Source of the DNA: Utricularia gibba
Taxonomy: Eukaryota; Plantae; Magnoliophyta
DNA length: 64,000 nt
Reading direction: 5' to 3'
NCBI GenBank assembly: GCA_002189035.1
Contig: CM007990.1
Span: forward strand, 2,728,001-2,792,000
The position numbers and the translations under genes were made by a program. The notes under the pieces are model-generated. The model saw nothing but the letters and a program-made list of their open reading frames with translations, was not told the DNA's origin and did no database searches. How positions within the stretch are numbered: the stretch's first letter is position 1; every line of letters begins with the position of its first letter. Of this stretch, positions 8,871 through 59,812 are shown piece after piece.

Positions 8871-8884
8871 ATTTGTATTGACTG

Positions 8885-9030
8885 CATATTGTTTTTTATT
8901 TTGAATTTGCACTATTAGTTGATCGTTATTTGGATTGAGTGTATATTTTTTTATTTTAAATTTGTATTATTAGTTGATCCTTAAGTATTTTCTAGATCGA
9001 GAATATATTTTTTATTTTAAATTTATATTA
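8885..9030. repeat. About 60-bp tandem repeat (2-2.5 copies) with core gatccttaagtattttctagatcgag
   Basis: Similar to the gatccttaggtatactttg(g/a)atcgag units at 49070-49100 and 51395-51545. Confidence 0.7.
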
Positions 9031-9234
9031 CGTATTATTTAATCATTTGGAATGTTTTGAATTGAGTTTTCATTTATTCTATATTTCATTTATTTAAACA
9101 ACAATAATCTTAATATACTATAAACTGAATAAAATAATATTAACAAATGCAAATTTAAAGATAAGTCAACAATCAAGATATCAGAACTACTGCATAATTA
9201 TTCACAAGAATGTCGATTGAAAGGTGTCTCTACT

Positions 9235-11035: not shown

Positions 11036-11096
11036 CAACAAACACCCATAAACATTGTATAAACAATCGAATTACATCAAATGCACATGAGTTGGA

Positions 11097-11498
11097 ATGA
11101 AGAAGGTGTTTTTGAGAAAATATTTTCCAGCTTTCAAGGCTGAAGGGATAAGAAAAAAGATTAGTGATGTTGAACAAATGAATGGCGAATCATTGCATGA
11201 ATATTGGAAAAGGTTTAATCATCTTTTGGGCTCCTGCCCGCACCATGATTTTCAAACCAATGCATTGGTCAAATATTTCTATGATGGACTTTTATGCATA
11301 GATAGGGCCAAAGTAGATTCAGTGGCGGGAGGATTTTTAAAGAAAAAAACATCAACCGAAGCTCTTTCCTTGCTTAAGAAATTGACTGAGCATTCAAGAC
11401 ATATTATCAGGAAACAAGCCTCAAACAAAAGAGTGTATGAAGTGGAGAGTAAGTCTAGGGCTTCAAAGATTCTCTATCTTGATGGCAATTTCCCATAA
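11097..11498 (+). pseudogene. Athila-like retrotransposon gag fragment
   Basis: KVFLRKYFP...QMNGESLHEYWKRFNHLLGSCPHH...YFYDGL...VDSVAGG...KT..EA is typical of the Retrotrans_gag domain. Confidence 0.85.
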
Positions 11499-11900
11499 GT
11501 GCTCTTTGTACTCCTCCAAGCTTCTGTCCATTTATAATTTGGCAAGTCGTGTCATGTTTGTTTCTTCTAACGTATATGAACCAGATCTGAGTCAATGTTT
11601 CTAACTTATTGGCATGATCCACAATTTAATCTCATCATTGATATTTTAGTACTGAAATGCATGTTTGCATCTACTCAACCAGCTAAGGGGTGAATTTCAC
11701 CATCATATTTTGATAGTTTTAAGCACAATTTATCAATTCCCAATTTGTGGTGGTAAGCTTTAGATTCCTTTTCCCATGAGTGATCCTACACCATGATGGT
11801 TGGAGTTTTATGGCAAGGAGTCATGATGATGAAGTTCCATATGCTGTTTCAAAGTTGTCATCCAGGTGCCCATCTAATTTTGTAGTGCCTTAGTCATCTC
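11480..11900 (-). pseudogene. Gypsy gag N-terminal remnant, possibly the 5' part of the element at 2395-8870
   Basis: LKLSKYDGEIHPL...YKWTEAW...TYGKLPS resembles the FPxFDG...WxxF...RFG pattern of chromovirus-type gag. Confidence 0.5.
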
Positions 11901-13520
11901 TTTGTGTTCTTCCATTTCGTTGCAGGAAAGTGCTCTGATATAAATTGTGATTGGTTTTGGGATTTTGATCATATAATAGAACCTTCAAAATTAGTTGAAT
12001 TACCAATTGTAGTCAAAACATAAGTAGGATTCGGATCGGAATCCTTACACTTCCACCAACATATAGCTTTTGCTCTGAAATGTAACAAATGGAAAATGTT
12101 TAGACAATGGTAGCTTCAACAAAATGGTTTGCACAACTAGTGAAGGATGATTGGTGTATTTTAGGTGTCATTTTTAATATTAGGATTAAGTTGTCCAATA
12201 AGGACTTATGTTAATAATTATTACATTTATGCTTTATGACGTAAGATTTTGTTGTGATGATTGAAGAGATTACTTGCCTGAATACAAAAGCTGAATTCAC
12301 AAGAAAAATAGAAAGAAGGAAGGGAGAGGAACGTGAGAATTAAATGCATTTTGGGATGTGAATTAAAAAAGAATTTGAACTCAGACTAAAAATCTTTTAA
12401 CTTGAACATGAATATTGTAGCACTTTTGTTCTTCCTCTCCACCATAGGGAGGAAGAAGGTTTTTTTTTTTTTTTTTCATTTTCTTTTTGTTTATGTTGAT
12501 CATTCATCACTAATTTTTTTTAGTTTCAGAGGATTGATAAAGTTTCTTTTAATATCTTGAGTACAACTTTCAGTGATTCATTGAATTTCTTCTTGATTTC
12601 ACATATTTTCATATGTAATGTTATATTTTTTCTATAATGCCTCTTAATCATGGCCCATGAGCAATGGGACACTTCAATCCTATTAGTTTGAGAAAGATAG
12701 TGAATTTTCTATGATTATGATACTTCGTTAATGCATAGATAGTGGCATTGTACCTAATTCTTAAGGCTTTAAGATTTTAGGGTAGTGCCCTTGTATGCAT
12801 ATAAGTCAATTTTGAAGGCAATCGACAGCAATCCATTTGTATTCTCAATCATTCAACATAGAACAACATGAGAGCAATTGATAGTTATTCCCTTTTCTCT
12901 TTTTAAAAAAGTGTCAAGGAGACTAGATTATTTCTTATTTTTATGACCAATTATTTGGAAAAAAAAAACTAATGAAAGTTGAAATAATGAGAGACAAAAA
13001 ATAAAAAGAGATTTTCTTTTTCAGGAATTATTTCTCTTAATCAAAGTCTATTAATTACGTTTTATATTCTATTACACTAAACACTTCCTACAAACCCATG
13101 ATAATATGCAATCGATTACCACAAAATTAATTTTACAAAACTCAACTTTTTATGATTGATACTTGTACTATAACCTTGTTCTGTTTTTGTGAATTATTTC
13201 GCTTATAGTGCTGCCCCATCCAATAAGAGCCGATTTTGTAATCAAAAATTGGAGGGGACATATCTCCATGTCAGAAAAGTTCCATGTCCAGATTTGTCTT
13301 CTCGCAAATAGAAGTACTAGAACGGAGAAGAAAACAGAGTTTTTGGGAACCATTGGAACATACGAAAAGGAGGCACAAATTCACAAAGTTCCTAAATTTC
13401 TGGGTTCATCATGTTTCGGGAATTTTGTTCTTGATAGAGAGATTTCTACCCTGATGTACAAGAGCGAGAGAAGCAGCAAGGTAGAGCAGACTCCCTGCTG
13501 TTACTCAAGATAATTTTATC

Positions 13521-13750
13521 ATGGCAGAACAAGAGAAGACCCTGAATGAACTTGATGCAGCTGACCATACGTACATAGGGCTTTGTATAAGGTTTTATGA
13601 TGACACAACCAATGAATTAAAGCTAGCTACGATTAATTTTTTGTCCAAGTATTATGGAAAAGTGGGTAAAAACCCACATGAACATCTTGACAACGTGATT
13701 GTTGTTTGCACCTCTTTTAAGAGTGCTGGTATGACTGAGGATGCTATCTG
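13521..13750 (+). pseudogene. Athila-like gag N-terminal fragment
   Basis: MAEQEKTLNELDAAD...LCIRF...ELKLATINFLSKYYGKVGKNPHEHL...VVCTSFKSAGMTEDAI matches the RTLxELAAP...ELKSGLIHLLPKFHG..GEDPHKHL...VCST pattern. Confidence 0.8.
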
Positions 13751-14754
13751 TTTTTTTTTTTTTTTTGTTATTTCTTATTTTTCTGTTATTGTCATAGTTT
13801 TTATCTGTTTGTGCACTTGCACAAGCAATTGGTCTATTTGTTTTTTTATTTTTGTTCATCATTTATTTGTGTAGATATGTAGAGAATTGATTGAGATATA
13901 ACCTATGTCCTGAATTCGAGAAGATCGATGCCGAATTAGATCAAAAAACTGGTCTACACAACAATATTGTGAAGAAGAAATTTGGAAGCATTTGCACACC
14001 AGAGTATTTATGTAAATTGGAAGAGACCCCCACTAGGTGGAAGGATAATGAAACTGAAGATGGAGTTTCAAGAAAATATGTCCTTGACTTTGCGTAAGCT
14101 GCAGAAGAGGATTGTGTTACATAGGAACATTTGGGAGCAATGGATCTTTTTGAGGACCACAACCATGAATTATTTGATCAAGGCATACATCAAAAGGAGC
14201 TTTGAAGTTCCTTAAGCTTCGTAAAAAAAAGTTTTGAAAGAAGAACTTGTCATTATAAGTAAGGATTTAATTGAAGAATATGATTTTGTTTTTAACAAAG
14301 ATATCTTTCGTAGAATACACCAACTCAAGAAAGCTTTGATCCCATGCATTGGAGCTTTCCATTTGAGTTGTACAAAGAGCAAACAAGAGCATGGTGTGAT
14401 GGGCACATGCACAAGATGAAATAATTTCGTTATTTGATATTTTAGTTAACTTGTAATTTGGTTTGGATTTGGTAGAGGATGTTTTACAAATTTTGGTATT
14501 TGGGAGTTGGGAATTTGGTTCAGTATACCACCGAATGCTCACACCTATTTGTATTTTTTTCTATTTTCATGTTTATTTTCATATTAGATTTAAGTGTGTG
14601 TGTATAGATGCTTGCTGTTAAGGATTGTGTTCAAGCTTTACTTGTAAAACTCATGCACATGTGATTGATTTACCATGTTTTTCGACATTTAATTTGAGGT
14701 TTGATTTTTTTTTTTTCGCAACGTTCTCTTTACTAACATACTTTTTAATATCAC

Positions 14755-15256
14755 ATAACCCCAAGGGAGTGTGGGAGAATCTAAGATTGGCCTCAAGAAC
14801 TTAAGGAGAATGGCTCAATCCAATATTGTTAGTAAGACAATTATGTCTAATATGTCTGCGAGATGTGTGGTGTAGGGATTAGATTTAGATGTGGAGAAAA
14901 CATGGATTATCATAAGAGGTAACATGGTTCTGATGGCGTGGTTGATTCTATAATCCCACTAAATGATGGCCGGTGCAATAATGGTTGACGAGTAATACTA
15001 TTTTTGAATAACACCCCCAGAATTTGCGCAAGCAAATCAGTACTTAGGATTTACACCATATGTATTGACTAGTTTTGAGTAAGATGGATTTTTGATCTAA
15101 AGTCACTATTTATATTATTTTTAAAACCAAATTTTTTTCTATTTTCGATGTTTTGAGTCATTTTTTTTTATAAGAAAGTTTCAATAACAATTTGTTATGG
15201 ATACTATCTTATTTTATTAATTTGATAGTTTTTGTGTACTTGTAGAATTAACATTA
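14755..15256 (+). mobile_element. 3' half of an Athila-like LTR related to the solo LTR at 32220-33412
   Basis: Colinear similarity to 32925-33412 (ggcctcaag..., gtctgcgag, ttagattt, gtggttgattc, taacacccc, gaatta.cat.a). Confidence 0.75.
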
Positions 15257-15749
15257 GTAAAATTTTCTAATTTTTACTACTTATTTAAATTGTTTAACTT
15301 TAGAAAATTAAATAATTTAATTTGTTACTAATGATGTTATTAACCATTTTAGAAAAAATGACCAGCCTACAATTATGTTATATTACAGAATCAGTAAACA
15401 TTATAGAGTAAGTTTGCGACATATTACACTCTAGTAAGATTTTTTTATGAATTTTACAAACTAATGGATCATTAAAAGTAAAACAATAAATAATAGTGTC
15501 AATATTCAAAAAAACGATGAACCTTGTTATGCAATATTTAGGAAATTGTATATCCAATATGTGAAAAAGTTATTAATAAAAAGAAAAAACGTATGTAACA
15601 AAGTCAAACTGTACATCCCTCTTCTTTACCTTATTATGAGTTCTTTGATCACTCTTTTGACTTTGTCTTAGTGAAAATTATTTTCTAATTATGAGCACCC
15701 CTAGTTTTTAATTATTGCTTTCCTCAAAATCATTAAGTCAACTAATTTT

Positions 15750-16460
15750 ATGGAAATCTATAAGAAAAGTAGTTAACATCCTTCAACCACGTAACATATG
15801 GCTTCATCTCTGGCTTGTCCTCCACTGACTTTCTCCATAAAGAGTAATGATTGGTCATTCTTTCTCGGTTTTTTGAGTTCTTTGTTGTTGTTTGAAAGTA
15901 TGTGAAAATGGAATACATAGAAGCAACCTCAAGGATGTTGACAGGACCACACCCTTGTGAGTCACACTTCATGTGTTACACCAAGCAACACTTTCCCTAA
16001 GGCTAGGGCTGCCACTTTCTTTGGAGCAGGCAATGATCAATACCTTTCTAGAACTTGTAAGAGAGTATTTGGGACTAGAAGCAAGTTGCTTGGGGTGTGC
16101 TCAAGTAAGGAAAGATAGAGAACCGGCTTACCATTACAAGGCTGAGGTCAAAGGGAACCTTGCTGTTGAAGTATTGATGAGAGACCAAGTGAGATTGATA
16201 AATCTAATTTGCTCATTCGACTGGACAAAAGGACAACTCTCCTAATTGGATCCACTATGAGCATTCTCTCTCATTCGAAGTTGTCAAATGTGACTCATCT
16301 TTGAGATAAGCAACTAGACTATGTGATTGCTCCATACTTGTCGATAAGAGTACCCTGTGGCTGATGCACCAGAATTCGGCTACATGATGAAATAGATGAG
16401 CTGATCGTAGACGGAAATTTGAGTACTCATCTTTTCCATTAAAGAACCAACCTCCCTATG
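15750..16460 (-). pseudogene. Ty1/copia gag/integrase remnants
   Basis: FFNGKDEYSNFRLRSAHLF...FW resembles the copia gag N-terminus; GCGPV...SMYS is integrase-like. Heavily decayed. Confidence 0.4.
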
Positions 16461-16886
16461 GATATAAGCATTCTTTGAATCCGTTCATCTTTGAGTGACA
16501 TTTCATCCGTGGTTTTTTTCCCATTGAGGTTTCCACGTAAAATTTGGTGTTTTTTTCGTTTTGCATTAATATCACACAACCACAAAGTTATTGTTTGAAT
16601 CAAACTCCTCGATATTCCTTTTGAGCCTGTCAGCTACATGCTAAAATATAACACTTGCCAACCATGTACATCTCCACAATTGCCCAAAAGAGGATAGAAT
16701 GGGGATGGATGTTGATTCTCCTAGGCAAAAGTTGTTCTCTGTTTAGCGTAATTACATAGTAGGTATACAAACACCAGGAAGATCGTGACATCAAAAGGGC
16801 TGAGGAGTTAGTGACCGAGCTGAAGGCCACCAAGAAGTGTATCCAAAGAATGAAGATGGAGGGATGTGGCCTCCAGAGGAACTATT

Positions 16887-18269
16887 TGATGGATGAAAAA
16901 TTTTAAAGATATCGTGGATCTAAAGATTCTTCCTATCAAAGGATTTTTTAAAACTAAACAGGCAATCTACATCTCATTCACAAAGAAAATAATATAGTAA
17001 TAGCAAATCTAGGTTGATCCATAGAGACCAAACGGTTTTCAATTGTAAGTCCTATGCGTAAGTGGTATTAAACATGAGGTTTTTGTCTTGAAGTGAGTTT
17101 CTACTCTAATGTAATTAGAAAAATTCTTAAACTAGTTTTTACACTAAAAATAGACAACAAAATATGTAAATCGATATTTTTAGAAATTTAAAAGTAAGCA
17201 TTTTACTTTATTCAAAAATTAATCATGCTTAAAAGAAAGCTTAAACATCCTAATGCTATTGTTCTGATTTACACATGAAAGTAGTGAAGAAAATGATGAA
17301 GAAAGCATGCTGAGTTGATGATAACATTTAAACAGAGTAAACTGAGGAGTAGGAAATGTAAAATGCTAGTAAATTCACGAAGATTCAAAAAAAAAGTTTT
17401 GCAGTAAAAGAAAAATATTTGTTTAGTTCTCCAAGTCAGTTTTGCGCATGCGTCATCTTCTTCTTCTCACATAGGCTGGTTCTAAGGCTTTGTTGTCTGA
17501 GTTCCTGGTTCTAATGTTGTTTTGGATGATACAGGTAGTTTTAGTGTCACATTAGAAACTGCTTCCGTTGTCTCCTTCTCAACAAGCAGGTCTCTATCTT
17601 GGCTAGATTTTGGCATCAAAGGTAAGTTCCACTGTCATACTAGAACTGTTCCTTCTTTGTCTTCTTTCTAGAAATCTGCTCAAACTCATCAGAAAAATGT
17701 CTTCCAGCATCGGAATGCCCTCTTATCCCTTTACTCAATCATGTCTAACCCCTGTTGCATGTTGTGGGGTGGCCTAGCTTCTCCCCATAATCCCTTGCTT
17801 TTTTATTTTTTTCCTTTTATACCTGCAATCAAATCATGTCAATCTGTCCCATATCTTGAAAATCAGAGTTGTCAGCATCCTGCTTTTCAGCTGCAGTAAA
17901 CCTGTAATTCTGCTTTGAGTTGCAACAGTTCTCTTCTTCTTTTTTTCCGACACTCACTTAGAAAATATCCTTTCTTGCTAATTCAGCTTCCTACGTAGAA
18001 CTGTAATTCTTGATTTGTCTATGTACTAAAAACAACTTTACAAACTGGTCAAACACAAGGCCTAGCCCAAATCGGCTGGCAGTTCCTGAGCTTGGATGAA
18101 TAGAAAAGACTACCTCAATCCACAGATTAATGCAGAAAATGGCCCAAAACATACTTTTATCAAAAACAAAATTTGATACCATTAATTTTGATATTTTCCC
18201 TATTTTAACTCACCTAATTCCTTATCAAACACTAAAAATAACACATAAATCAAATTTGACATAACATCA
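16887..18269 (-). mobile_element. Solo LTR (Athila-like), 1383 bp
   Basis: tg...ca termini (tgatgg at 16887, aacatca at 18269) with a perfect 5-bp TSD ctatt (16882-16886 / 18270-18274). Confidence 0.85.
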
Positions 18270-26393: not shown

Positions 26394-29300
26394 ATGGAGA
26401 AGAATCACAGAATGTTGCTCACAGTCGCACCATTTGAATGTGCTTGGCATGATGATTTAAAGTTCAAGGAGGCTGGCAGAGGTTGTGTTGCATTCGATGC
26501 GTTTGCAGACAACGATGTCACAATCGTATTTCGTGAGAATGCTGCGAGTCAGAAGTACCATTACAAAAGAGATAACAGCCCGCATTACACAGTGATCATT
26601 GGTAGCCACAGGAACAAGAAGTTGAATATTCAAGTCAATGGAAGACTGCTGTTGATGTTTCTGGGATTGATCTTTGCTGTTCTTCAACATTTCAGAGTTA
26701 CTGGATAAGCATCTACGATGGTTTGATAAGCATTGGCAAGGGCAGGTACCCATTTCAAAATCTTGTATATCAGTGGCTTGATTCGAACCCCATTTGCAGT
26801 GTTCAGTACGTGGGGCTAAGCAGTTGGGACAAGCATGTTGGATACCGAAATATTAACATTTTGCCCTTGAATCAAAACCATATATTCTTGTGGAAGCATG
26901 TTAATTATGATGGATATAATTGCATAGAAGTGGCAGATGAAGAGATGGAACTCACCAGAGAGTTCGAAAATTCTGGGCTTGAATCTTTTCTTGAGAGCTG
27001 GCAGTTGGCTGATGCATTTTTTGTTGTTGGAACTGAAGAGAAGGTTGTCCCAGCACATAAAGCCATACTGGCTGCATCTGGAAATTTTCCGTTGAATCCC
27101 TCAGGAGATGACTTCATTGAGATTTTACATTTTTCATATCCTATCCTACATGCTGTTCTTGAATATATCTATACAGGATGTACCAAGGTCAGATTTAGTA
27201 CATGATAAGTTATGCAATCTGTATCTTAGTTGCTTATGCTCAATCTTCTTTAAAGCTTTGGTGATTTTCTTAATATCACAGTTTGCGATAAAAAGATCAG
27301 TATGATGAACCCTCATTTTTATAGAAGATCTTCAGCATGCTTCAAAGCCCTCTGATTTTCTCTTGCAGGTTCCAGAGCCATATCTCTGTTTTGTGAAAGA
27401 CCTAAGTGCAAAGTTCGAAGTGAAGGCATTGGTCAAGCAGTGTGAAGAAATGATTCAGCGTTTCAAATTGAACAAGAAACTGTTTGACTCGGGAAAATGT
27501 GTAGAGTTAACATATGATGGATCCAGAATCAACTGCTACAACAATTTCTTCAACAGACTACCCATCGAAATTAAGATGCTTACTAGATTTTTAGGAACTG
27601 GTCTGTATAGTGATGTGAACATACATGTTGAAAGTGATGAACACATTGTGAAGGCACATAGAATTATTCTTAGTATATGGAGCTCCCCTTTCACTAAGGT
27701 ATGATGTTACTTGAGTTTTTGATGCTGAAATATACAGGTTTTGTTTGGTATAATACATTTTCCTTCATTGATTAATCATGATTTCTGCACTTTTTTGCTT
27801 GAACAATAGGATTTTGAAAACTCAAGTTTTGAGAAAGACTTTGTTATAGAAGAAATCCTTGTTGGCAATGGACTTTTTTAGTTTGTATTACACACTTTAT
27901 TTTGTTCTCATATATGAATGTTTCATATTAATAATGGAAAAAATATTTATACATACGGCTTTTGATGTTTTTGAATTAATGGTGAATGGGCAGAGTTGAG
28001 ATTGATTATCAAGTTTTAGGACATTTTATTTTTGGATGATGATAATTTATTATCATGAATTTTTTACAGATGTTCACAAACGGGATGAATGAAACATTGT
28101 CCTCTACGATTTGCCTCAAAGATGTCTACAGTGATGCATTCAAGATTATGCTTCAGTTTATGTATAGTGGCGAAGTTCTAATTGAAGACTACTTGGACGC
28201 GGACACCTTGTTACTCAAGCTTCTCCTGCTAGCAGATCAGTTTGGGGTTACAATTCTTCATCAAGAATGCTGCAAACTCATCCTCGAACACCTTTCCGAG
28301 GTTCGATCAACAGCTGTCAAATCCTCAGATACTAGTATCTCAGTGAAAGTAGTATTAATTTGCTGTTTTTGAAGTAATAAAAGATACAGAGTGCATGCAT
28401 CAGCCTTCTGATCACAAAACTAGAAAAAGAACATTAATACCTCTCATCTACGTGCTATATGCAGGCATGAAGAGTACTAATGGCAGAAGGTCATACTGCA
28501 AGTTTATCTATTATTCCAACTTTATTGGACGAGGATGCAGAGAATTTGGGCCAATATTGGGATTTGATATCTAACTTTTGAATTTTGTTGCAGGACTCAG
28601 TTGGCAATATATTGCAAGTGGTTACATCCATTCCTTCATGTAAGTTAATCGAAGAAGCATGCCTGAAGAAGTTCTCAATGCATTTTGATTATTGTACAAC
28701 TGCCAGCGTCAACTTTGTCATGCTAGATGAGGAGACATTCGGCAGCATTATTCAGGTGATTGCCATTCTTTGCTGTGATCAGTTCCTGCTGGTTTCAAGA
28801 ACAATGTCTTTGTAGTCTTTTACATCTGTCATCTTGCCCAACCTGCATTGTATGTAAGAAGTTAGTGGTCATGTAGTTATTCTTCTCTCAATCAACTGAT
28901 GTTGAACTTGGAGGTTGTCCCAACCCTCATGGAATTGATGATGCAATTGTGGCATATGCTTTAACTGTAAAATTCACTTTTCCTGCACAGTCTTTATGGA
29001 ATTTAATGGTCTGTAGATTTTTCTGTACAGCATCCAGATCTGACAGTAACATCCGAAGAAAGAGTTCTCAATGCAGTCTTACTGTGGTCTTGCAAAGCAG
29101 AGGAGCTATTTGGATGGGAAAGGGTTGATCAGATGATTGCAAATTCAACACCCAGAGTTATTTTTGGTCGCAGGCTAGATGCACTGGAAAAATTTTTGCA
29201 CTCTATTCGATTCCCTTTACTTTCTCTATCCATAATTCAAAATGTACGCCCTGTACCTCATATTTGGTTTTTGATCCTCCTCTATTTAAAATTTTTTGAA

Positions 29301-39329: not shown

Positions 39330-40380
39330 AGCGTTATATGGTGAAACAACCTTTCAATAATTGACCTATTAGTGGTCTTTGCTTTTCGATAAGCTTAATG
39401 TCCATGATCGTAGGGCATACACCTCTTTGCGGATGAACACTCCCATTTTTCTTCAACTTTGTCATCTACTTGTGAATGATTATGGTCTAAAGAGAAAATC
39501 ACAAGTTGATGTTGAAGAAGAAGTGGCAATGTTCCTTAATGTAGTCGGACACCGAGAAACAATCATTCTTTGCAAGAGTTTTTCTAGTGTGGGGCTGATA
39601 CTATCCACAAGACTTTCAACAACGTATTACAAGCCTTAATCCAAATGTCCCTCGTATGGTTACAGCCTCCGAATGCATATCATATGGTTGATCCATATAT
39701 TCAATCGAATGATAAGTATTATCCTTTTTTTTAAAGATTGTATTGGTGCAATTGATGGTACACATGTTAGCCTCAGATCATGCTGCTGATCGCGTCCATT
39801 TTATTGGACGTAAGGGAGAATCGACGCAAAATATTCTTGTTGTTTGCAACTTGAACATGTTTTTTTGTTTTTGCACTGGGTGGAAATGAAGGCATTTGTC
39901 ATGATAGTAGGTTATTACGCTAATGCTTAGGGGATGATCGTTGTGATTTTTCAAAATCACCACCTGGTAAGTACTACTTAGTAGATTTGGGATTCCCTAA
40001 TATCAAAGATTACATGTCTCCATTCTACAACCAATGATATCATTTACGCGATTTTCAATGTGTGTGGTTTTAGAACTGCACAAGAGCTTTTCAATTATAG
40101 ACACTCATCACTATACAACTGTATTGAGCGAACTTTTGAAGTATGGAAAAACAGATTTCATATGGTGAATGATTTCCCTCATAACTTGCCATTTAGAAAA
40201 CAAGTGCATCTTGTTTTAGTTACGATAGCGATACACAATTTTTTGCATGTAATTGATGCTTACGATGATGGTGCAACTTTAGATCAATATAACAAAAAAC
40301 CTCATCTTCCTAGTGATGAAGAAATTACAAGTGAAGATCTAGATGAGTCTTATGGACGAGTTGAGAAACTCAATCTGTAA
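39330..40380 (+). pseudogene. PIF/Harbinger DDE transposase, decayed
   Basis: LRMNTPIFLQLCHLL...VEEEVAMFLNVVGH; DCIGAIDGTHV; GRKGESTQNILVVCN; GKYYLVDLGFP; ELFNYRHSSLYNCIERTFEVWKNRF...AIHNFL. Several frameshifts. Confidence 0.9.
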
Positions 40381-41227: not shown

Positions 41228-43025
41228 ATGGACAAGGGTAGCATCAAATGCCCAGCAAACTATGTTCCTCTCACGCCCATCAGCTTCCTGGAAAGATCGG
41301 CACTTGTTTACGGAAACCGAGTTTCTGTTGTTTATCGGGATTTCAAGTTTACTTGGAAACAGACCCGTGATAGGTGCGCAAGCCTCGCTTCCTCTATCCA
41401 GGGACTTGGGATTTCTCGCCGCGATGTCGTGAGTCTCTGTTGTTTTAGCTGCCTTGCTGAATCTATTTTTTCATGGGTTCTGTATTTTTGTGTAATTTTC
41501 GCATTCGGTTATCATTATCAATGGTGGAGAAATTCTGTCAAGGAATTTAGTTCGCCTTTTTGAACAGGTTGCAGCTTTGGCCCCAAACATTCCAGCGATG
41601 TTGGAGCTGCACTTTGCGGTTCCTATGGCGGGGGCAGTCCTGTGTACACTTAACACGCGCCATGATTCGGCGATGATCTCATCGTTGTTGCATCATTCGG
41701 AAGCTAAAATCATGTTCGTTGACTACCAGCTTCTTGATGTTGCAATGGGGGCAATCAAGATTTTGTCTAGTAAAGCTGCCAAGTTGCCTCTCTTAGTTTT
41801 GATACCTGAACATGGAGAGAGTAAGAATGGCAATCCAGCTCCACAAGGGATTTTAGAATACGAGCCCCTTTTGTCATCTGGAAGGGCCGATTTCTGTGTC
41901 GTGAGGCCGAACGATGAGTGTGAACCTATTTCCCTCAACTATACATCAGGTACAACGTCAAGGCCGAAGGGTGTTGTTTACAGTCACAGAGGTGCATACT
42001 TGAATTCTTTAGCGAGTATTCTTCTGAATGAGATGCAATCTCTTCCTGTTTTCCTGTGGACTGTTCCTATGTTCCATTGTAACGGTTGGTGTTTCACTTG
42101 GGCTTTGGCTGCCCAAGGAGGCACAAGTATATGCATGAGGAATGTAACTGCAAAGGAAATATTCAGAAACATAGTTGATCATGGTGTGACTCACATGGGC
42201 TGTGCTCCTACCGTTCTCAACATGATGGTGAATGCATCCAAATCGGAGCAACAGGTGCTTCCGAGAAGGGTTGCAGTAATGACCGGCGGAGCACCTCCTC
42301 CCCCTCAGGTTCTATACAAAATGGAGGAGATGGGATTCACCGTGATGCACTCTTATGGTTTAACAGAAACCTATGGTCCTGGTACTGTGTGCACTTGGAT
42401 GCCCGAGTGGAACTCCCTGCCCCTGGAAGAGCGAGCCAAACTCAAGGCTCGTCAGGGTGTTCAGCATATTGGAATGGAGGAAGTCGATGTCAAGGATCCA
42501 ACTACCATGAAGAGTGTCCCTCCTGATGGGAAGACCATGGGAGAGGTGATGTTCAGAGGAAACACCATAATGACAGGTTACCTGAAAGACGGTGAAGCCA
42601 CAGGGGAAGCCTTCAGTGGAGGGTGGTTTAGAAGTGGGGATTTGGGAGTGAAGCATCAGGATGGTTACATCGCACTCAAAGATCGCTCCAAGGATATAAT
42701 CATATCAGGAGGAGAGAACATAAGCACCATTGAAGTTGAGTCGGTGATATTCAGCCATCCCGCGGTTCTTGAGGCTGCTGTCGTTGGAAGACCAGATGAT
42801 CACTGGGGCGAGACACCTTGCGCCTTTGTGAAACTCAAGGATGGATGCAATGCGAGTGCAGGGGAGATTATCAGATTCTGTCGTGAGCATCTGCCGCGTT
42901 ACATGGCTCCCAAATCTGTAGTTTTCGATGATCTTCCCAAGACTTCCACGGGCAAGACACAGAAGTTCATCCTCAGGGAAAAGGCCAGGGCCATGGGGAG
43001 TCTATCGAAAACAAGCAAACTCTAG
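41228..43025 (+). CDS. AAE1: Peroxisomal acyl-activating enzyme 1-like (AMP-binding), 552 aa, C-terminal PTS1 SKL
   Basis: Exons 41228-41428 and 41568-43025. Motifs: [30 protein letters not shown] (AMP-binding), [33 protein letters not shown]; ends TSKL*. Confidence 0.95.
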
Positions 43026-46383: not shown

Positions 46384-47019
46384 AATATTACAAGATAAGA
46401 TTTACCAATAAAATGATTGTCTATAAAACACATACATTATTAGAGAAAGTGGAAGAAAAAACATGACAATAGAAAGAGATTTGAATTTTCAGTAGAGTTG
46501 CTCATCATATAATCCCATATTATGTTCTTTTCAATCCACTCAAATTCATTATATTTTTTTTTTAAGAAATGGGTTTGTGAGTCGAGTATAAGAGGTGGAT
46601 ATTGTTCCTTTCATGAACGGGTTTAAGATTATAAAATCCATACCTGCCCTTTATCTACTAAAAATCCAATCTTCACGGATTGGGTACGGGCGGGTATCCA
46701 ACTGGTTGGATTTTTCACCTATTCCTACTTGAGGCAACCACTTTATTCGCCATGGAATAGAAGGAGGAGCTTGTTAAGAATTCCACACTCAAATGGTAGA
46801 ATTTCATTTTCTAGAGATATTAGAAATGCCTCATTTGATTCATAATTCACAAAAATCAGTATTTCTTAAATCAAAACTGAGCCCTTTAGGCCTCGTTTGT
46901 TAGGTGGGTTTAGTCCTCTAAACCCTTGGGTAAAAAGTGTTGTATGCGTTTGTTGGGGTGGTTTAGTAAAACATAAGGGTTTGTATTATCCCGAATTAAA
47001 CCTGCAGCTGCTGGTTTCA

Positions 47020-47090
47020 CAAAACCCACGTGTGAGGTGGGTTTCGCAAAACCCACGTGTGAGGTGGGTTTCGCAAAACCCACCTCACAC
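47020..47090. repeat. 27-bp tandem repeat (2.6 copies) ending in a hairpin and containing the TIR core aggtgggttt
   Basis: Unit caaaacccacgtgtgaggtgggtttcg; stem gtgtgaggtgggttt / aaacccacctcacac. Confidence 0.9.
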
Positions 47091-47357
47091 AAATACAACT
47101 TGGTCGATAATACCCTTCTACTCCATAAGCAAATTCGCAACAGTAAATCTATGTATTTGTTCATCTTCTTCAACACAAATCTGTTGGGTTTTTGCAGGTA
47201 CATGGTGAGTGAATTCGAATTCTGATATTTCGACGAAAACCCATACTTCAATTTAAGCCAATAGTACTTATTTTTTGTTTCGCATATGATGGAGTCGGTT
47301 TTTTTTTTTTTTCCGAAAATTGCAGTAGGTTGTGCGTTGCTTATTGAGGCTGTTGCA

Positions 47358-48714
47358 ATGGTTTCCAAGAAGATTATTTTGGCTGCCCTTGCTGCGGCAC
47401 ATTGCGTTGGTCAGCATCTATGTATTATGCGAGTTATGATTGTTATAATGTTGCATTTCTGTTGTACACCAACCGATAGGAGAATTCGGTTCTCATACCG
47501 AGAAAAGATACCACGACAAATAGAGCATTTGACTGCCTTGTTATCTGATTCAAGGAGTGCTTGTCTTGAAAACTTACGATTAAGTGCAGATGTTTTCAAC
47601 AAGTTATGTTATGTTCTTCGAAGTAATGGTAGACTAACCACTTCAAGGTATGTCGATATTCCAGAGCAAGTTGCATTGTTTTTGGGTATTTTGGGTCATC
47701 ACAGGAAAACAAGGCAACAGAAATTTGAATTCATGCGAAGCAGCTGGACAGTGTCCAAATATTTCAATGTGGTATTGTCGGCGGTGCTGTCATTGCACCA
47801 AAATTTACTTAAGACACCTATGCCAATTGATGTTTCTGATCCCAATTCTAGCTTCAGATTTTTTGAGGTATGCAAGAAGATTTTTCTTCGTAGTTGTGGA
47901 TGTGCAACGTGTATTCTGCATGCTGTAACTTTCTGCTCTATTTTTCAAAATTGCTTGGGTGCATTGGATGGTTCATATTTTCAGGTGAAAGTCAAGAATC
48001 AAGATAAACCAAAGTGGAGGAATCGTAAAGGAATCGTGTCCACTAATGTGCTAGGAGTGTGTGATGATAAGCTCATGTTCATCTATTTGTTGTCCGGTTG
48101 GGAGGGATCCGCTGTTGATAGCAGGGTGCTGCGAGATGCAGTTTGTCGACAAAGAGCATTCACTGTACGCAAAGGTAGGTGCTTACAATGTGTAGAAGTC
48201 CATAGTTATGATTACCTTTCATGTATTCCATTTTTTTGTAGGGCATTATTACTTGTGTGATAATGGCTACACAAACGCAGAGGGATTTCTAGCACCCTAC
48301 AGGGGTGTTCGGTACCATCTGAAAGAGTGGGGTGCCGGGTCCATTGCTCCACAGAATGCGAAGGAATATTTCAACATGCGGCATGCTTCTACAAGGAATG
48401 TTATTGAGAGGGTATGGGGTCTAATGAAGATGAGGTGGAGTATTTTACGAAGTTATAGTTTTTATCCTATTAAAACACAAACTCGTATCATACTTGCATG
48501 TGCCCTGCTTCACAATTTTATTCGGCGAGAAATGCCAACTGATCCATGGGAAGAGGTCATTCCGGAAGAGTACCGCAATTCGGATTCACAGGAATATGAG
48601 GATGATGAACATATTTCCTCCATAGGAAACTCAGAGGAGTGGACACAGTGGCGGGATTCAATGGCTGAGATAATGTTTGCGCAATGGAGAGAGACCACAC
48701 GAAGAAGGGTATAA
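47358..48714 (+). CDS. PIF/Harbinger DDE transposase, nearly intact
   Basis: CLENLRLSADVFNKLCYVLR, VDIPEQVALFLGILGH, CLGALDGSYF, WRNRKG..STNVLGVCD, SGWEGSAVDSRVL, YYLCDNGY, FNMRHASTRNVIERVWGLMKMRW, ACALLHNFIR. Introns 47868-47948 (acceptor reads caa) and 48175-48241. Confidence 0.9.
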
Positions 48715-48902
48715 GATGTACTAATGAATCTTGATATTTTATTGGTTTGGCTTAAAGACATTTTATTTCATTTTCCAATAGTTGATAAGCATTGTGTTGT
48801 GTTGTATTCATATTGTGCAAACACATCAGTTATTCCAGACATGATTTGCTTCTTACATTGGGTTATTTCCCACGGTGAACTGCCTTACATTGCAATGGAA
48901 TT

Positions 48903-49325
48903 CCAGTGTACCAGGCACCGCAAAATTTTTGTCTCGGTGTCTACAAGACACCCGTTTTAGGCACTGCAAAACGCCGCTCTCAGTGTCTGAGAAACATGCG
49001 TCCCAGGCACTGCAGAATGCCGCTCTCGGTGTCTGGAAGACACGTTATTTTAATATTTTCATTAGCGTTCGATTCTTAGGTATACTTTGGATCGAGCGTT
49101 GATATAAATTTAAAATAACCAAATATCCACTCGATTCGAATGATACCTAAGGATCGAACGCTAATAAAAATATTAAAATATCGTATCTGCCACACACCGA
49201 GAGCCGCATTCTGCAGTGCCTGGGACGCATGTCTCTCAGACACTGAGAGCAGCGTTTTGCAGTGCCTACAAGGGGTGTCTTGTAGACACTGAGACAAAAC
49301 TTTTGCGATGGCTGATACACCGAGA
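48903..49325. repeat. Long inverted repeat (about 200-bp arms, about 25-bp loop); a third partial arm copy at 49530-49610
   Basis: 48903-49100 pairs with 49125-49325, e.g. ccaggcactgcagaatgc / gcattctgcagtgcctgg and gattcttaggtat / atacctaaggatc. Confidence 0.9.
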
Positions 49326-49830
49326 CCAAAATTTAAGATTATAAATTACAGAATGTTTCCTTTATGGGTTTAAATTAGTTCGAGATTACATAAGATTTTT
49401 TTAATATTATACATATGAATTTATTTAAAATCACCTACTTTTTTACGTTAAATAAGTTTGATTTTAATTTTATTAACTATTTTAATATCTAATTAATTGA
49501 TATATATCATATTTATTTAAATTCAAGTAAAAGGCCGCTCTCAGGGTCTGGGAGACATGCGCTCCAGGCAATGCAGAATGCCGCTCTCGGTGCCTGGAAG
49601 ACACGCTGTAGACACCGTAACCTTTGAAATAGGTGCCTGGAGCAATCACGGTCCGGAATGAATATTAGGCCTCGCGTATTTGGGCCTCATAACAAACCCT
49701 CCGGCCCAGTCCTCACCCTCCTTCACCACGCACCTAATCGCCGCACACTGCAAAGCACGGCACACCGTCCCCACCTTAACCGCATGGTCCCTCCCCCATT
49801 TGCTTTCCTCTGATCTGTCTATCTCAAGAA

Positions 49831-51213
49831 ATGCTTACTTCCAAGAAACTCCAACTTCAGTTCGCCATCCCAGAGACGTACAATCTATGGGACAAGGCAA
49901 GCGATGAGACAATTGACGGTGTGGTTCCACCCAGGGTGGGAGTAACCGGGTTTTCGGTGTCCACCGAACACTTTCGGTGTGGACTTCGCTTGCCACCACC
50001 ACCATTCATATGTGAGTTGTTGGCATGTTTGGAGGTCCCATTGTCCCACCTGACACCCCGCTCAATCGCTCATGTGTTGGCGTTTTTGAGTGTGTGCATG
50101 GAGGAACAAATTACTCCGGCCCTACCAGTTTTTTTTTTACGTAAGTGTGTGCATTCGAAACTGGAAAACTAATCATTTCTCGCTGAAGGGTAAGCCAGGT
50201 ATTGCACTTGTGAATTCTATTCGGAGTGGATATGATGCATGGTGGACAAGCTTAATTTGGGTGTGTCCACTGGAAGACCTCCGAATTCCAACTACTCTCA
50301 GCTCCTTCAAGAAAATTGGAAAGGCAAAGGGTAATGTGTGATGTAGTATGGTTGCATGGCTCCTTGTGTTGGACGTCAACGGAGTGCTAGCAGACATTGT
50401 CTTCAAAGCCAAGTACCAAAGGTTGCATTGGAAACCAGATGCGGTGATATATGGGAGAAATAGTAAGACACCGTAACATTGTCTCATGGCTGTGTCATGT
50501 TCAACCAATCCATTTTTTCTTGGTTTGGCAGTCTTCCTCAAGCCCTTTGCTCGTGAGTTCATCGAATGGTGTCTTGCAAACTTTGATGTCGGTATATGGT
50601 CTTCGAGGGCGCGTAAGTCCCACTCCATGAAATCTGTAGAGCATGTGCTGCTATCTAATGCTCTAACATCTGTCTATGTTCTATAGTGCACAACTACATG
50701 AGATCACCAAGTGGGTGCTTGGGCCAGATGCACACACCTCGCTGGCTTTCATATGAGATGCATCGAAGACCACTTAAATGCATGTACGTGTGCATGATAA
50801 TAGGTCAAAAGCTGTTGTCTTGAAGGAGTTGTCGTGGATTTGGGGGAAGATGAAGGCTTCTTGGGTCGGTATGATGCAACCAACACCTTACTTATTGACG
50901 ACTCCCCGTTCAAGTCCATCAGAAACCCAGTTAAGTCTATCTGCGATCATATAGTCTGGTATGCATGTTTCTTACTGACATTTAGGCCATCCTGCTTATT
51001 GTGCCACAGCATGACAACGCTGTTTTCCCAACGCCATACCAGTACATGGATGTAAGAAATGCTGCATTAGCTGAGTGTGGAGAAATACGCATCTTCCTTC
51101 AAGGTCTACTAGAATCAAATGATGTACTGAGTTTCATAAAGCATGCACGAATTGGACAGCCTCCGTTAGATGCTAATCACCCCATGTGGGATTATTACAA
51201 AGTTCTTGCTTGA
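49831..51213 (+). pseudogene. Chimeric Transposase_28-like + FCP1/NIF-like HAD phosphatase gene, copy 2 (Harbinger cargo)
   Basis: GLRLPPPPFICELLACLEVPLSHLTPRSIAHVLAFLSVC (gypsy-associated PF04195-like), then LLVLDVNGVLADIV, VFLKPFAREFIEWCLANFDVGIWSSR, KAVVLKELSWIW, TNTLLIDDSPFKSIRNP, NAVFPTPY, IGQPPL...WDYYK (plant NIF/HAD family). Introns present. Lesions: T10 frameshift at 50129-50138, stops at 50339, 50754 and 50775, frameshift at about 50842. Confidence 0.88.
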
Positions 51214-51394
51214 ACATTCATGGCATGTAACAGTGGTTTGAATTTCGGAACATTATGATGTTACTCACTCTACTTTAATCATGGTTTTTCAATATACACT
51301 TCATAAATTACAAAAAACTAAACATAAATTCTCAAATATTCTTATATGCATATTCATTTAAAATAATACCTTAATTTAATATTTTTATTACCAT

Positions 51395-51725
51395 TCGATC
51401 CTTAGGTATGATTCAGATCGAACCTTTTTTTTATTTTAATATTGATATTATCATTTGATCCTTAGGTATACTTTGAATCGAGTGGATATTTATTTATTTT
51501 AAATCTTAATTAACGCTCGACCCTTAGGAGCAATTTGGATCGGGTATACCAAACAAGGGAACACGGGCGTGGTTTATTCATAAACCACGCCCGTGTACAT
51601 ACCCAGCAGCACCACAAGGTCACACGGGCGTGGTTTAGGGTTTACACGCCCGTATACCCTTGTTAGGTATACACGATCCAAATAAATATCCACTCGACTC
51701 GAATCACACCTAAAGATCGAACGCG
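51395..51725. repeat. Second foldback cassette: 3 direct gatccttagg...atcgag units, central perfect hairpin, inverted unit
   Basis: Units at about 51397, 51457 and 51517; hairpin acacgggcgtggttta-ttca-taaaccacgcccgtgt (51561-51596); reverse unit at 51680-51725. Confidence 0.85.
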
Positions 51726-51729
51726 ACAC

Positions 51730-52100
51730 ACATGCACTCAGTTGGCGCATCGATGCCAGGCACCGCAAGAGCATATTTGCGGTGCCTGAAAAGATAGGAT
51801 GCATGTCTTCGAAGGGCAATCCAGTGCAGTCAATACTTCACACCTAACACGCGAGAGGTCGGGCTGAGTGCCACACATATGCAGTTTACTAGCGCATTGA
51901 TGCCAGGCACCGAAAGAGCATATTTGTGGTGCCTGAAAAGATAGGATGCATGTCTTCGAAGGGCAATCCAGTGCAATCAATACTTCACACCTAACACGCG
52001 AGAGGTCGGGCTGAGTGCCACACACATGCAGTTTACTAGCGCATTGATGCCAGGCACCACAAGAGCATATTTGTGGTGCCTGAAAAGATAGGATGCATGA
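51730..52100. repeat. 147-bp tandem repeat, about 2.5 copies, each with a caggcacc...ggtgcctg hairpin
   Basis: gatgccaggcacc recurs at 51752, 51899 and 52046 (period 147). Confidence 0.92.
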
Positions 52101-52274
52101 TAGGCACTACAACCTTTATTTGCGGTGCCTAGAAAGGGATGAGTTCTGCTGTTCTGCTTTCTATAGGTTACGGGGGCTTGATAAATATATTTGGTTACAC
52201 AAATTGAAATCAGATATCAGCTACCCATGGCAAACATGTAAAGCGTAATATTGTCACGCAAAGCAAAATGATCG

Positions 52275-53425
52275 TCATGATACATGGACATCATAAGTGG
52301 ATATGATCAAAACAACAAAGGAAAAACAGAGGTGTAACGAACATCGTAGACCTCTCACAATCCCATCCATCATAACCTCACGTTCTGCACTATTGCTGTC
52401 CAAAAAAAGCTGTAGCTTTATGGGGTTACTCAAGATGACTTCAGTCACTCCTAGATGCTGCATTGTAGTTAATTGCAATGGCATCCCTCGAATGATGTCT
52501 GCAGTAGCATTTCAACGTTCCCGTAGGTCATTGTTTTCAGCAGTAAGTATTTCTCCCAGTTGTGCGATGGCATCATTTGTTCGCTTACTCATTTCTTTCA
52601 ACTCCTCCACCAAGCTATCAAGTTCTGGACCTTGCCTCCTCTTCTTCTTCCTAGGTTCATCACCACTAGTTGGTGTAGTGTGATTACCTGTGTGGCCTCT
52701 ATGAGTCCCTCCTGATGAGGGATACTCTTCATATGTAGAGGATGCATCATGTGATCTTTGGTCACCATTTTTTTCCGAGTCAACCTCCACTTCAGGATAC
52801 TCAAGAAGATGCAATGGTTGTTCCAAACCGGCTATAGAGTCATCAGCCTGCTGTGTTGCATCAGCAGCATCAGGGACACATTCTGCAAATTCTCCGGTGG
52901 CTCTATCTTTGCCAAAGATGATGCACCAATCTGGATAGTAAGGCCAACGCTTAAACCGCAACAAATTGTACACCTTCTCATTGTGCTACACATGTAATCC
53001 ATAAGTGTACATTAATAATCTCATAGGAATTACCTACTACATATATATTAGAACAACAATACTTGTTTGAACTCCACCCATAAATCCTCACTAGCATCTA
53101 CCATGTTTGTTGAGTTATCATACTCGGTACCTGACTTATTGAGAAAGTCAGATAGGGCATTGTAATCTTTTTTCCAGTTATGAATCTTTGATTACATGTG
53201 GGGAGTGCCTCTGATATCTGAGCCGGGACACAATTTGAGGAACGCCTCCTCTAGTGCTTGAAGATAATTACCTTTGAATCCATTCTCTGCTTTCCATCCA
53301 CCTTGAATGATATCCTTTAGAGCGTGGATCAGAAAGCGCTCTTCATCAGGTTTCCACTGTCTTTTGGTCTTAATGTTATCACCACTTCTCCCACGTTTTG
53401 TTGTAGGCACGCTTGCTCCAACCAT
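52275..53425 (-). pseudogene. Harbinger ORF1 Myb/SANT-like DNA-binding protein with two in-frame stops
   Basis: KRQWKPDEERFLIHALKDII..GWKAENGFKGNYLQALE; HM*SKIHNWKKDYNAL; intron 52986-53062; FKRWPYYPDWCIIFGKDRATG; RER*NATA. Stops at 53192-53194 and 52512-52514. 3' end approximate. Confidence 0.88.
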
Positions 53426-54924
53426 TTATGCAACCAACATATAAGTGCGCAACCCATGACAAAACCACAATGCACGTGTAGCTCAATATGGCACAAGAAG
53501 TATAACAACATTATATGGGTTTCAGGGGCACAATTCACAGCCATATTACTCAAAAAACATCACGCACACTAACACCCAGTCGCTCAATCCACGTGGTTAA
53601 GGTCATTCAACCGGCAAATGAAATAAACGCCTCAAATTCGAGAAAAAAATACCTAGTGCATCACCCAATACCCAATTTTTTGGTAAATCAAACTTGCTCC
53701 CAGAGTTGCATGAGCCAAAGATCCATGCACATCGCAACTCGAGGGTTTCAAATTCCCCAATCTGAATCTCACGTTTCTACATGTGGGGTCAAAATAGGAT
53801 AATAAGATATTATATTATACATAAAGGGTATATTAGAGAATTCATATTTTCGAGTATTGAGAAACTATGCATAAATCCTTTTAACAAACATATAAAATTG
53901 ATAATCTCATATTATTGAACCCTATCTACCAAACGCATACTTCATTCTAAACCATTATTTATGGGATACAATAAACTAAAATAATCTAAACCCTTTTAAT
54001 TTAAACCCACCTAACAAACGAGGCCTAAGTGTTTTGCTAGGTACAGAGTTCAAACCATCTATTTTTCTGAAAGATTTTAATAAAACTTTAAAAATTTGGA
54101 TAAAAAATTTGATTTGGCAAATTAAAAAAACCCGAAAGAAGATCTAAATTTTTTTCCCTATGAAAAGCTATTAACACCAAGTTTGGAGCAATCGAGAGTC
54201 TTGGAGTCTTTTATTGGAGTTTTGAAGTTGATTCTTATATTTTTGTAAGAGTATGAACTTAAATTAAATATAAATAAAACATGGGATATTAAAAAAAACA
54301 AAATGATTTTAATGATGTAGTTGATTTTATAATTTTAATACCTCTAAAACTTAGATAAAGGAATCAATACTTGATATTTATGAACACACAAATGAGCAAT
54401 TTTCTATGAAGATTATCTTTTTATTAATTCGATAATTTATGTATATTTACAGGTTTTTTTTATTAAATAATAACTTTTGTAAGAACCAATTAAGTCAATT
54501 GAGTAAAAAATGGAGATTATCTATTTATTTATTACGTAACTTATGATTTGTTCAATCGTTTCAATTTTTTATTTAGTTTTTATGAATTAAAATCTTTATA
54601 TGTTCTAGAAATTCTAATTTTACAATTTATTTTTAAAATTATTAATTTTTTAAAATTTGTATTTTAATGATTGTATAAAAATATTAATTAAAAAATTATA
54701 TTGTTTAATTTGTATAGAATTCAAAAATATATTTATAATTATAATGTAATGTATAAAGTTTTATAATATAATTTTAATATTTTCGAATATAGCTTTACCA
54801 CTTTAATATTAATTTTTTTTTATAAAATATAAAATACAAATTCAAAATGCAAAAAGCTCTTTAATTTTAGTAGATGATTTCTTTCAAACGTTTGAAGCGC
54901 GCGACGCATACGTTTCCCTCCGCC

Positions 54925-58906: not shown

Positions 58907-59812
58907 TGTTGCGTGTCATTTCCTCAACAAATTTTAAATATTTAAAACGTAAAACACAAAAAGCGTAGTACGAGTATCGATCTCAGGGAGTTGTTTTTCG
59001 TGAAAAATGTTTTGTAAGAAACTTCTACAAAATGTCATGGTTTTGTAAAAGGGGGTTTGTGAAATGCAGAAATGAAAGAAAAAACCTAAGTGATGAGCCT
59101 TGACTACGGAACGCAGTTTCTAGGAATGAGATTCTGTCTCCTTCCTTTGTCTATCCTCGCCTCGCTTTTCACTAATTTCTTTCGAATAATTGGTTATAGG
59201 AGCAAGGAATAGCCTACTCTCCCTTACACTCTGATTGACAAGGAGGCACAGGAATAGCCTCATGTGATTTCCTCTTGGACGATTAGGAAGACAAGAGGAT
59301 TGCCTTCGATTGCCTTCAAAATCGAATTGTGCGTGTGTGCGCAGCTGTTGCCAATGGCTAGTGGCAGGTTCGAGGTCACAACCTGTCCAGTGTCGCAGTA
59401 CCTAGGCCACAAACAATCCGCTATTTCCCTCGAACCGGTAGGGTTGGAGTTGGTGCTCATGGACCTTGACTAGAAGTCATTACAGAAAGAATGCAACAAG
59501 ATGCGTGGCAGTATACAGAATCCGAAATGAATTCAACAAAGAACTGAGTGTATTGCTCAAGACTTGGCAGGAAACTTCATCTTCTCTCAGAAACTAAAAG
59601 GTTTTAGCCACAAAGGGCCATGAAAAACAGAAATGAAATTGGAAACTAAGTATTCTTCCTCTTTGAGGGGAGAAAGAACTCAAAAGTTCTAAGTCTAGAA
59701 AGGAAATGGCAAAATTCTTGAAAATAAGTGCTCCAAGACTCTAAGTCTCCTTCCCATCATTCCTTCTATCTTGCGTGCGCCAGCAGCTTTCCTTTGAGTG
59801 CAAGTTAGGATT
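58907..59812. mobile_element. Second, truncated copy of the Tat/Ogre-like LTR at 6741-7878, in opposite orientation
   Basis: Reverse-complement similarity throughout, e.g. gtacgagtatcgatctcaggg and gattgccttcgattgccttc. ORFs 7269-7520 and 59264-59473 translate to near-identical peptides. Confidence 0.85.

Follow-up and report, generated by a model that had tools for sequence, protein, structure and literature searches.

A decayed PIF/Harbinger transposon of Utricularia gibba with a dead third gene that appears to have once joined a TRP28 domain to a NIF-like HAD domain

One or two genes are the usual content ascribed to plant DNA transposons, and an element that seems to hold a third one raises the questions of what this gene encodes, whether the gene was ever of any use to its carrier, and by which route it got there. 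These questions are posed by a 7.1-kb PIF/Harbinger element at positions 46889-54025 of a 64,000-nucleotide stretch of the Utricularia gibba genome (GenBank assembly GCA_002189035.1, contig CM007990.1, positions 2,728,001 to 2,792,000 of the forward strand; the whole of this stretch is hereafter "the window", and coordinates refer to it), which is 35% GC plant DNA with host genes mixed with transposon remains. Between the convergent 3' ends of the transposase and Myb/SANT genes of the element lies a 3.5-kb cassette that consists of repeat arrays and a spliced "cargo" gene, in which a TRP28 (Transposase_28, PF04195) domain is followed in frame by a HAD-type block resembling NIF (PF03031). The reading we favour, with a probability of roughly 70%, is that a PIF/Harbinger family present in many copies and amplified recently, with a once-selected third gene of the TRP28-NIF(DxN) kind, is represented here by a decayed element in which that gene is a dead passenger.

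The element can be recognized by its ends and its two core genes. In the 64 kb there are exactly two occurrences, inverted relative to each other, of the 24-nt sequence GGCCTCGTTTGTTAGGTGGGTTTA, against 0 expected by chance; they form the left (46889-46912, plus strand) and the right (54002-54025, minus strand) terminal inverted repeat (TIR), so that the perfect TIRs claimed by the first-pass annotation of this DNA were indeed there. The 3-bp flanks, TTA on the left (46886-46888) and TAA on the right (54026-54028), do not make up an identical duplication. Each of the two is compatible with the TWA target of PIF/Harbinger elements, and the simplest reading of the differing middle base is one substitution after insertion. 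The TIRs are of the short GGCC/GGGC type, with a first 11 nt that an Orobanche minor element (locus L001, see below) also has in its TIR, and their AAACCCAC motif is also carried by a 27-bp subterminal tandem repeat (47013-47093, plus strand, 2.6 copies, 97% matches).

The transposase gene (47286-48714, plus strand; exons 47286-47867, 47949-48174 and 48242-48714) matches DDE_Tnp_4 (PF13359) with an E value of 9e-14 on its last exon, and the removal of two introns yields a conceptual coding sequence of 426 aa that has no stop or frameshift and can be aligned with Lamiales homologues from about residue 45/98 of the latter through the C-terminus (42-46% identity in the N-terminal block, 55-58% in the C-terminal one). 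The catalytic D, D and E are all kept, as LGALDG, YYLCDNGY and NVIERVWG align to the homologues. The homologues from Orobanche minor and Salvia also have an intron at the position of the first one (47868-47948, 81 nt), whose last two bases here are AA where AG would be expected; it is in frame, and leaving it unspliced would add 27 residues right before the first catalytic Asp. Calling the transposase "near-intact", as was done at first sight, is thus fair. A word-index search with the transposase open reading frame (ORF) found the nearest transposases, 44-46% identical, in Lamiales, and retrieved no further member of this Harbinger family from the protein collections. The second core gene, placed on the minus strand by the first-pass annotation as well, is a Myb/SANT-like one (52515-53425, minus strand; exons 53425 to about 53064 and about 52985 to 52515) that matches Myb_DNA-bind_3 (PF12776; E 2.9e-6), has one in-frame TAA (53194-53192) within the domain, and is similar to the Myb genes adjoining related transposases in loci L001 and L002. 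With both core genes present, the element is autonomous in design.

What, then, does the gene between them encode? The cargo gene (49831-51213, plus strand) is divided by GT-AG introns into three exons, the first of which (49831-50612) holds the TRP28 domain followed by HAD motifs I (DVNGV, 50372-50386, as part of LLVLDVNGV) and II (IWSS, 50594-50605); intron 1 (50613-50803) starts with GTAAGT, exon 2 (50804-50929) contains KELSWIW and LLIDDSP as motifs III and IV, intron 2 (50930-51009) starts with GTTAAG, and exon 3 (51010-51213) encodes a C-terminal NIF-like block up to a TGA stop. The TRP28 assignment is well above the Pfam cut-off (40.0 bits vs. 26.2; E 4.8e-10), whereas the best cargo piece reaches just 14.3 bits against NIF, which is below the cut-off of 21.8 because the gene is broken and could only be scanned in pieces; in a language-model search, the top three matches of that same piece were NIF clusters (score 0.89). 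A PDB sequence search with two HAD blocks returned no NIF chain, and an Atlas search with the last cargo exon gave no usable match. Judged by eye against the known HAD pattern, motifs I-IV follow each other in the right order both here and in a second copy of the gene found elsewhere in the window (copy 2, described below), where motifs II, III and IV read NWSS, KELNYVW and LLIDNSP. Motif I is DVNGV in the cargo gene and HINGV in copy 2, so the second Asp of the DxDx(T/V) pattern is replaced by Asn in both; the motif being DxN and not DxD, a phosphatase activity of the cargo protein is doubtful. The proposed fusion of a retroelement domain to a phosphatase within a Harbinger has therefore to be restated: the TRP28 and NIF-like parts do stand in one frame, but the copy is dead, and its motif I is DxN.

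The death of the gene in this copy is plain from at least five lesions, namely, a frameshift in a T10 run (50129-50138), two stops (TGA at 50339-50341, TAA at 50474-50476) and two 1-nt gaps, of which one follows 50606 in exon 1 and the other 50841 in exon 2, the first of these gaps being evident from other genomic copies and the second from both these and copy 2. Of the spliced fusion gene described initially, the design with GT-AG introns stands, their donor positions being shared with copy 2, whereas the gene itself is broken here; the promoter-like motifs of its own were not confirmed, as the 230 bp that precede the ATG showed no TATA box and only a GC-rich stretch. On the opposite strand of the gene, a 151-aa ORF (50173-50628, minus strand) has no Pfam match and is probably a chance one.

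The TRP28 part has few and distant relatives. An exhaustive profile search of 1.84 billion representatives with its 113-aa ORF yielded just 25 weak matches, 29-49% identical over the matched stretches, with the best-scoring one at 37% (E 7.8e-9), and full-length identity of the cargo TRP28 to database TRP28 proteins amounts to 25-37%. By Pfam, all 25 relatives are TRP28-only, with none having a NIF domain, i.e., there is no annotated fusion relative among them. The predicted structure of the ORF is helical (predicted local distance difference test score, pLDDT, of 85); Foldseek found no match to this model in the PDB, and a wide VIA search gave a best Z of 4.5, below the level considered meaningful for the tool, with several MerR-type DNA-binding domains recurring among its matches, which is only a hint of a MerR-like DNA-binding fold.

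Was the fusion, dead as it is here, ever a functional gene? The evidence on this point comes from copy 2 (9239-10995, minus strand), a more decayed copy of the TRP28-NIF-like gene revealed by a tblastx comparison as seven collinear coding blocks that include TRP28 and all the HAD motifs; it is also matched by database TRP28 proteins, has many stops, and is about 420 nt longer than the cargo gene between the TRP28 and HAD parts. Both intron donors (after motif II and after "RNP/RNL") are found at the same positions in the two copies, while the intron sequences are not alignable. Over 218 codons, the copies are 62, 75 and 38% identical at codon positions 1, 2 and 3, respectively, a contrast that is somewhat inflated by the choice of blocks based on their amino-acid similarity, and dN is 0.385 with dS saturated, so no dN/dS ratio can be given. 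Even with the selection bias allowed for, this pattern of coding substitutions points to long past purifying selection on one two-domain protein, which would mean that the fusion once encoded a working protein. A random captured scrap would not be expected to look like this, because two deeply diverged copies have kept the blocks, the donor positions and the coding pattern of substitution.

Copy 2 also bears on how closely the gene is tied to Harbingers, as no Harbinger TIR, transposase or Myb gene was found nearby, and the TRP28-NIF-like gene is thus not Harbinger-specific in this window. It adjoins a gag fragment and lies 3 kb from hAT transposase remains, and a search for the ends of an element enclosing it, including one for hAT TIRs with an 8-bp duplication, found none. 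What it does share with the cargo gene is the array downstream: the 60-bp B units at 51366-51542 of the cassette are homologous to an array of 3-4 such units at 8869-9097 (69.8 bits vs. 30.4 +/- 2.8, with a maximum of 41.9, in 200 dinucleotide shuffles), within which all three of the best B-unit matches outside the element fall. At least this array therefore seems to travel with the gene, even if the two are oriented the other way round to each other in copy 2, which has no A or C repeats. As for the surroundings of copy 2 in general, the hAT remains (4150-6000, minus strand; Dimer_Tnp_hAT and hAT-like RNase-H) are likewise devoid of recognizable ends, and one repeat, which measures at most 1 kb and lacks any recognized domain, occurs three times in the window (6902-7878, 12519-12964 and 58907-59806; 80% and 67% alike). 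Two of its copies flank copy 2 and the gag fragment (11097-11498) in direct orientation, but are too diverged to be regarded as the long terminal repeat (LTR) pair of one element.

The cassette around the cargo gene (48888-52357, its bounds being the points where diverged family copies lose homology) has the layout given by the first-pass annotation, with a size of 3.5 kb. It begins with a foldback (48906-49320) of 46-bp A units and 60-bp B units followed by their inverted copies, whose 191-nt arms are 90% complementary (fold z of -33.6), and continues with further A-type units directly upstream of the cargo gene (49529-49605, plus strand; 90% alike to 48968-49044), the A-unit motif AGGCACYGCA having 8 matches, all of which are within the cassette. 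Downstream of the gene lies a second foldback (51366-51724; fold z of -15), in which 3-4 B units (51366-51542) and an inverted B unit (51684-51724) surround palindromes (51533-51683), and then an array of about 2.4 copies of a 147-bp tandem unit (51723-52136, plus strand, 96%), each unit with a AGGCACCGCA...TGCGGTGCCT palindrome. If the first foldback, which seems to be confined to a subset of copies, were transcribed, its arms would give a long hairpin of cargo-flanking repeats, from which, speculatively, small RNAs with a silencing effect might arise, as they do from Mu killer.

How the element fares in the rest of the genome was judged from contigs of four DNA sequencing runs (X1, X3, X5 and X6) mapped to positions 47700-53699 (6 kb) at a likeness of at least 80%, which placed 406, 647, 81 and 1335 contigs, respectively. 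All 200-bp bins have depth in three of the four runs (X1, X3 and X6), and 17-27% of the placed contigs are at least 99% alike; taken together, these figures indicate that the element in its full length, along with the cassette, forms a repeated family some of whose copies are recent. Several variants occur: deletion derivatives are seen, a direct junction of 49046 with 49632 in some contigs removes the second arm of the first foldback, the 147-bp array differs in copy number (joint 51805 to 52117), and at the TRP28/HAD junction, near 50360, the sequence to the left or right is a different one in some contigs. Part of the other contigs have the same 1-nt gaps at 50606 and 50841, while at 50841 copy 2 keeps the frame that the cargo gene has lost. 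That gap alleles are shared implies that the broken cargo allele was copied by transposition as this sub-lineage spread, and that the cargo is not needed in cis there. In Harbinger copies that have diverged further (about 83% alike), homology ends at 48887 and 52358, precisely the cassette borders (defined by loose contig ends at 48887/48896 and by matches stopping at 52358 in X1 record 8 and X3 record 16), which implies that relatives outside the closest subfamily hold other sequence there. Outside this genome, a search of JGI metagenome contigs for the TIR gave no match.

Locus L001 of Orobanche minor contains a complete Harbinger element (9722-16888) with TTA on both sides and the 11 shared TIR bases; its transposase gene is followed 478 bp downstream by a Myb gene in the same orientation, and there is another, weakly Myb-like gene as well. 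The Harbinger loci of neither Orobanche minor nor Salvia, the two Lamiales species compared, have any TRP28/NIF similarity. The acquisition of the cargo thus appears to be lineage-specific, as far as these relatives go. In the window itself, there is a fragment of another, unrelated decayed Harbinger transposase (39394-40046; 29-41% identical to P0029), and the likely host genes include a 482-aa ORF of an AMP-binding enzyme (41577-43025) and a BTB-domain exon (26723-27205).

Put together as a sequence of events, the favoured reading would run as follows. In this family, the convergent 3' ends of the transposase and Myb/SANT genes would enclose a third gene along with repeat arrays on both sides of it; the third gene would belong to a transposon-borne gene family fusing TRP28 to a NIF/FCP1-like HAD domain with a DxN motif I; the fusion would have been under long purifying selection as a once-working protein, and would move among transposon contexts along with its downstream 60-bp repeat array. 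At the last multiplication of the element, the gene would already have been broken in this sub-lineage, transposition presumably needing just the two core genes and the TIRs, with the cargo here as a dead passenger. Several observations weigh against this reading: the NIF assignment is below the Pfam cut-off; the codon contrast is exaggerated to some extent by the way its blocks were picked; no intact cargo copy was seen; sampled words of the sequence were absent from the RNA runs, which proves little; the cassette is not common to all relatives, given the loss of homology at 48887 and 52358; and its presence in most family members rests on contig coverage, which is unable to rank the parts.

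It is the origin of the cassette for which other explanations have to be weighed, and the one deserving the most room, though we consider it unlikely, is that the gene and the A, B and C repeats form a non-autonomous mobile unit in their own right (for example, an internally deleted MULE or a foldback-type element) that inserted once, by chance, between the Harbinger genes and has been hitch-hiking since. Such a unit could well be bracketed by inverted motifs of its own, as the cassette is by the outermost AGGCACCGCA at 48913 (plus strand) and 52121-52130 (minus strand), would have repeats unrelated to the subterminal AAACCCAC motif of the Harbinger, which is the case, and would account both for the same gene with the same B array being found outside any Harbinger and for the breaks in homology to diverged Harbinger copies at both borders. 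However, no TIR with a target-site duplication was found at those borders, and copy 2 has its B array inverted relative to the gene and lacks the A and C repeats; moreover, an independent unit differs from the favoured reading solely in how the cargo arrived.

An altogether different account would be Pack-type transduplication, in which fragments of host genes, never useful to the transposon, have always drifted neutrally. Plant DNA transposons commonly capture gene fragments (PMC8903248, PMC5861414), and a copy full of lesions whose sampled words are absent from RNA runs is what neutral drift would leave behind; yet both core genes are kept here, unlike in Pack-type elements, and a whole two-domain gene has conserved its introns, start and stop in spite of saturated dS and unalignable introns, with third codon positions at 38% identity vs. 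75% at the second ones. We regard transduplication as already disfavoured and quite improbable. To the notion that a Retand LTR retrotransposon contributed the cassette, by recombination of its region from pol to the 3' LTR into the Harbinger, we would give the least credence of all: antisense TRP28 ORFs do exist in Retand elements, about half of which have tandem arrays in that region (PMC11963269), but no LTR, pol or gag similarity was found in or beside the cassette, NIF is not among the domains reported for the Retand antisense ORFs, and the nearest TRP28 proteins are only 29-49% identical over matched stretches (37% for the best-scoring one) and in none of the 25 cases coupled to NIF.

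Returning to the favoured reading of a once-selected third gene, what could its intact protein have done? Judging by the arrangement, it was probably an accessory factor of the transposon, with a NIF-like part that would bind phosphoproteins or be weakly catalytic and would be anchored on chromatin by the helical TRP28 part, possibly through DNA binding of the latter. A far more specific proposal, which is tentative and to which we ascribe rather poor odds, would have the TRP28-NIF(DxN) proteins as undescribed accessory regulators of plant transposons, spread as a gene-plus-repeat module among Harbinger, hAT and MULE elements, with TRP28 binding its own 46-, 60- or 147-bp arrays and the pseudo-phosphatase engaging the C-terminal domain (CTD) of RNA polymerase II or a silencing component, thereby promoting transcription of the carrier or protecting it from silencing. 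The expectation that the arrangement had not been described before was borne out in so far as no paper linking NIF/FCP1 with transposons was found in the literature searched. The present copy, being dead, documents the architecture only.

Among known systems, the two-gene PIF/Harbinger elements (maize PIF, rice Ping/Pong, L001) are naturally the closest ones, as they are alike in their GGCC-type TIRs, DDE_Tnp_4 transposase with an intron at the same position before the first catalytic Asp, and Myb/SANT-like second gene, and have a TWA target, which each flank of the present element fits by itself; they differ in having no 3.5-kb third-gene cassette, the two genes of L001 being just 478 bp apart with no TRP28/NIF similarity. 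Pack-type transposons are DNA transposons that likewise have coding sequence of host origin, introns included, in their interior, but the element described here is autonomous in design and carries a whole gene with what appears to be a signature of past selection rather than a mosaic of fragments. How transposons deal with host silencing is a subject on which VANC and MURB have been informative, and a two-domain gene kept by selection in several transposon superfamilies would, if true, be a new candidate for a factor of this kind. VANC of VANDAL21 and MURB of MuDR are extra proteins encoded by transposons beside the transposase, with VANC acting on the repeats of its own family (cited in PMC12973397); they belong to MULEs, a superfamily other than Harbinger. 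An anti-silencing role of the cargo, as suggested by the first-pass annotation, goes too far, as no evidence for it was found, the copy is dead with a degenerate catalytic motif, and its sub-lineage spread with the gene broken.

The two parts of the cargo have their own separate counterparts. TRP28 typifies the antisense gene that Retand LTR retrotransposons carry, often has tandem arrays alongside, and is predicted to bind DNA (PMC11963269, PMC6317226), so a TRP28 domain, a spliced accessory gene and accompanying tandem arrays are common to Retand and the element at hand, whereas the Retand genes sit antisense between pol and the 3' LTR, and the cargo gene sits between Harbinger genes with no LTR or pol nearby, in a DNA transposon, and is fused in one frame to a NIF-like HAD block. 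The cargo brings together a CTD-phosphatase-like fold and a domain that has until now been known from Retand retrotransposons. The joining of a transposon-type domain to a phosphatase-like one has its parallel in the PMD-PP7 pair of plants, which is held in trans (MAIN/MAIL1 with PP7L) or fused in cis (MAIL3), is under purifying selection, and itself acts on transcription and transposon silencing (PMC7156037). The domains of the two systems are unrelated (PMD and a PPP-type phosphatase domain vs. TRP28 and a HAD/NIF-type one), and MAIL3 is a host gene, whereas the cargo is transposon-borne; if our reading is true, the TRP28-NIF(DxN) gene would therefore be a second, independent case of such a pairing.

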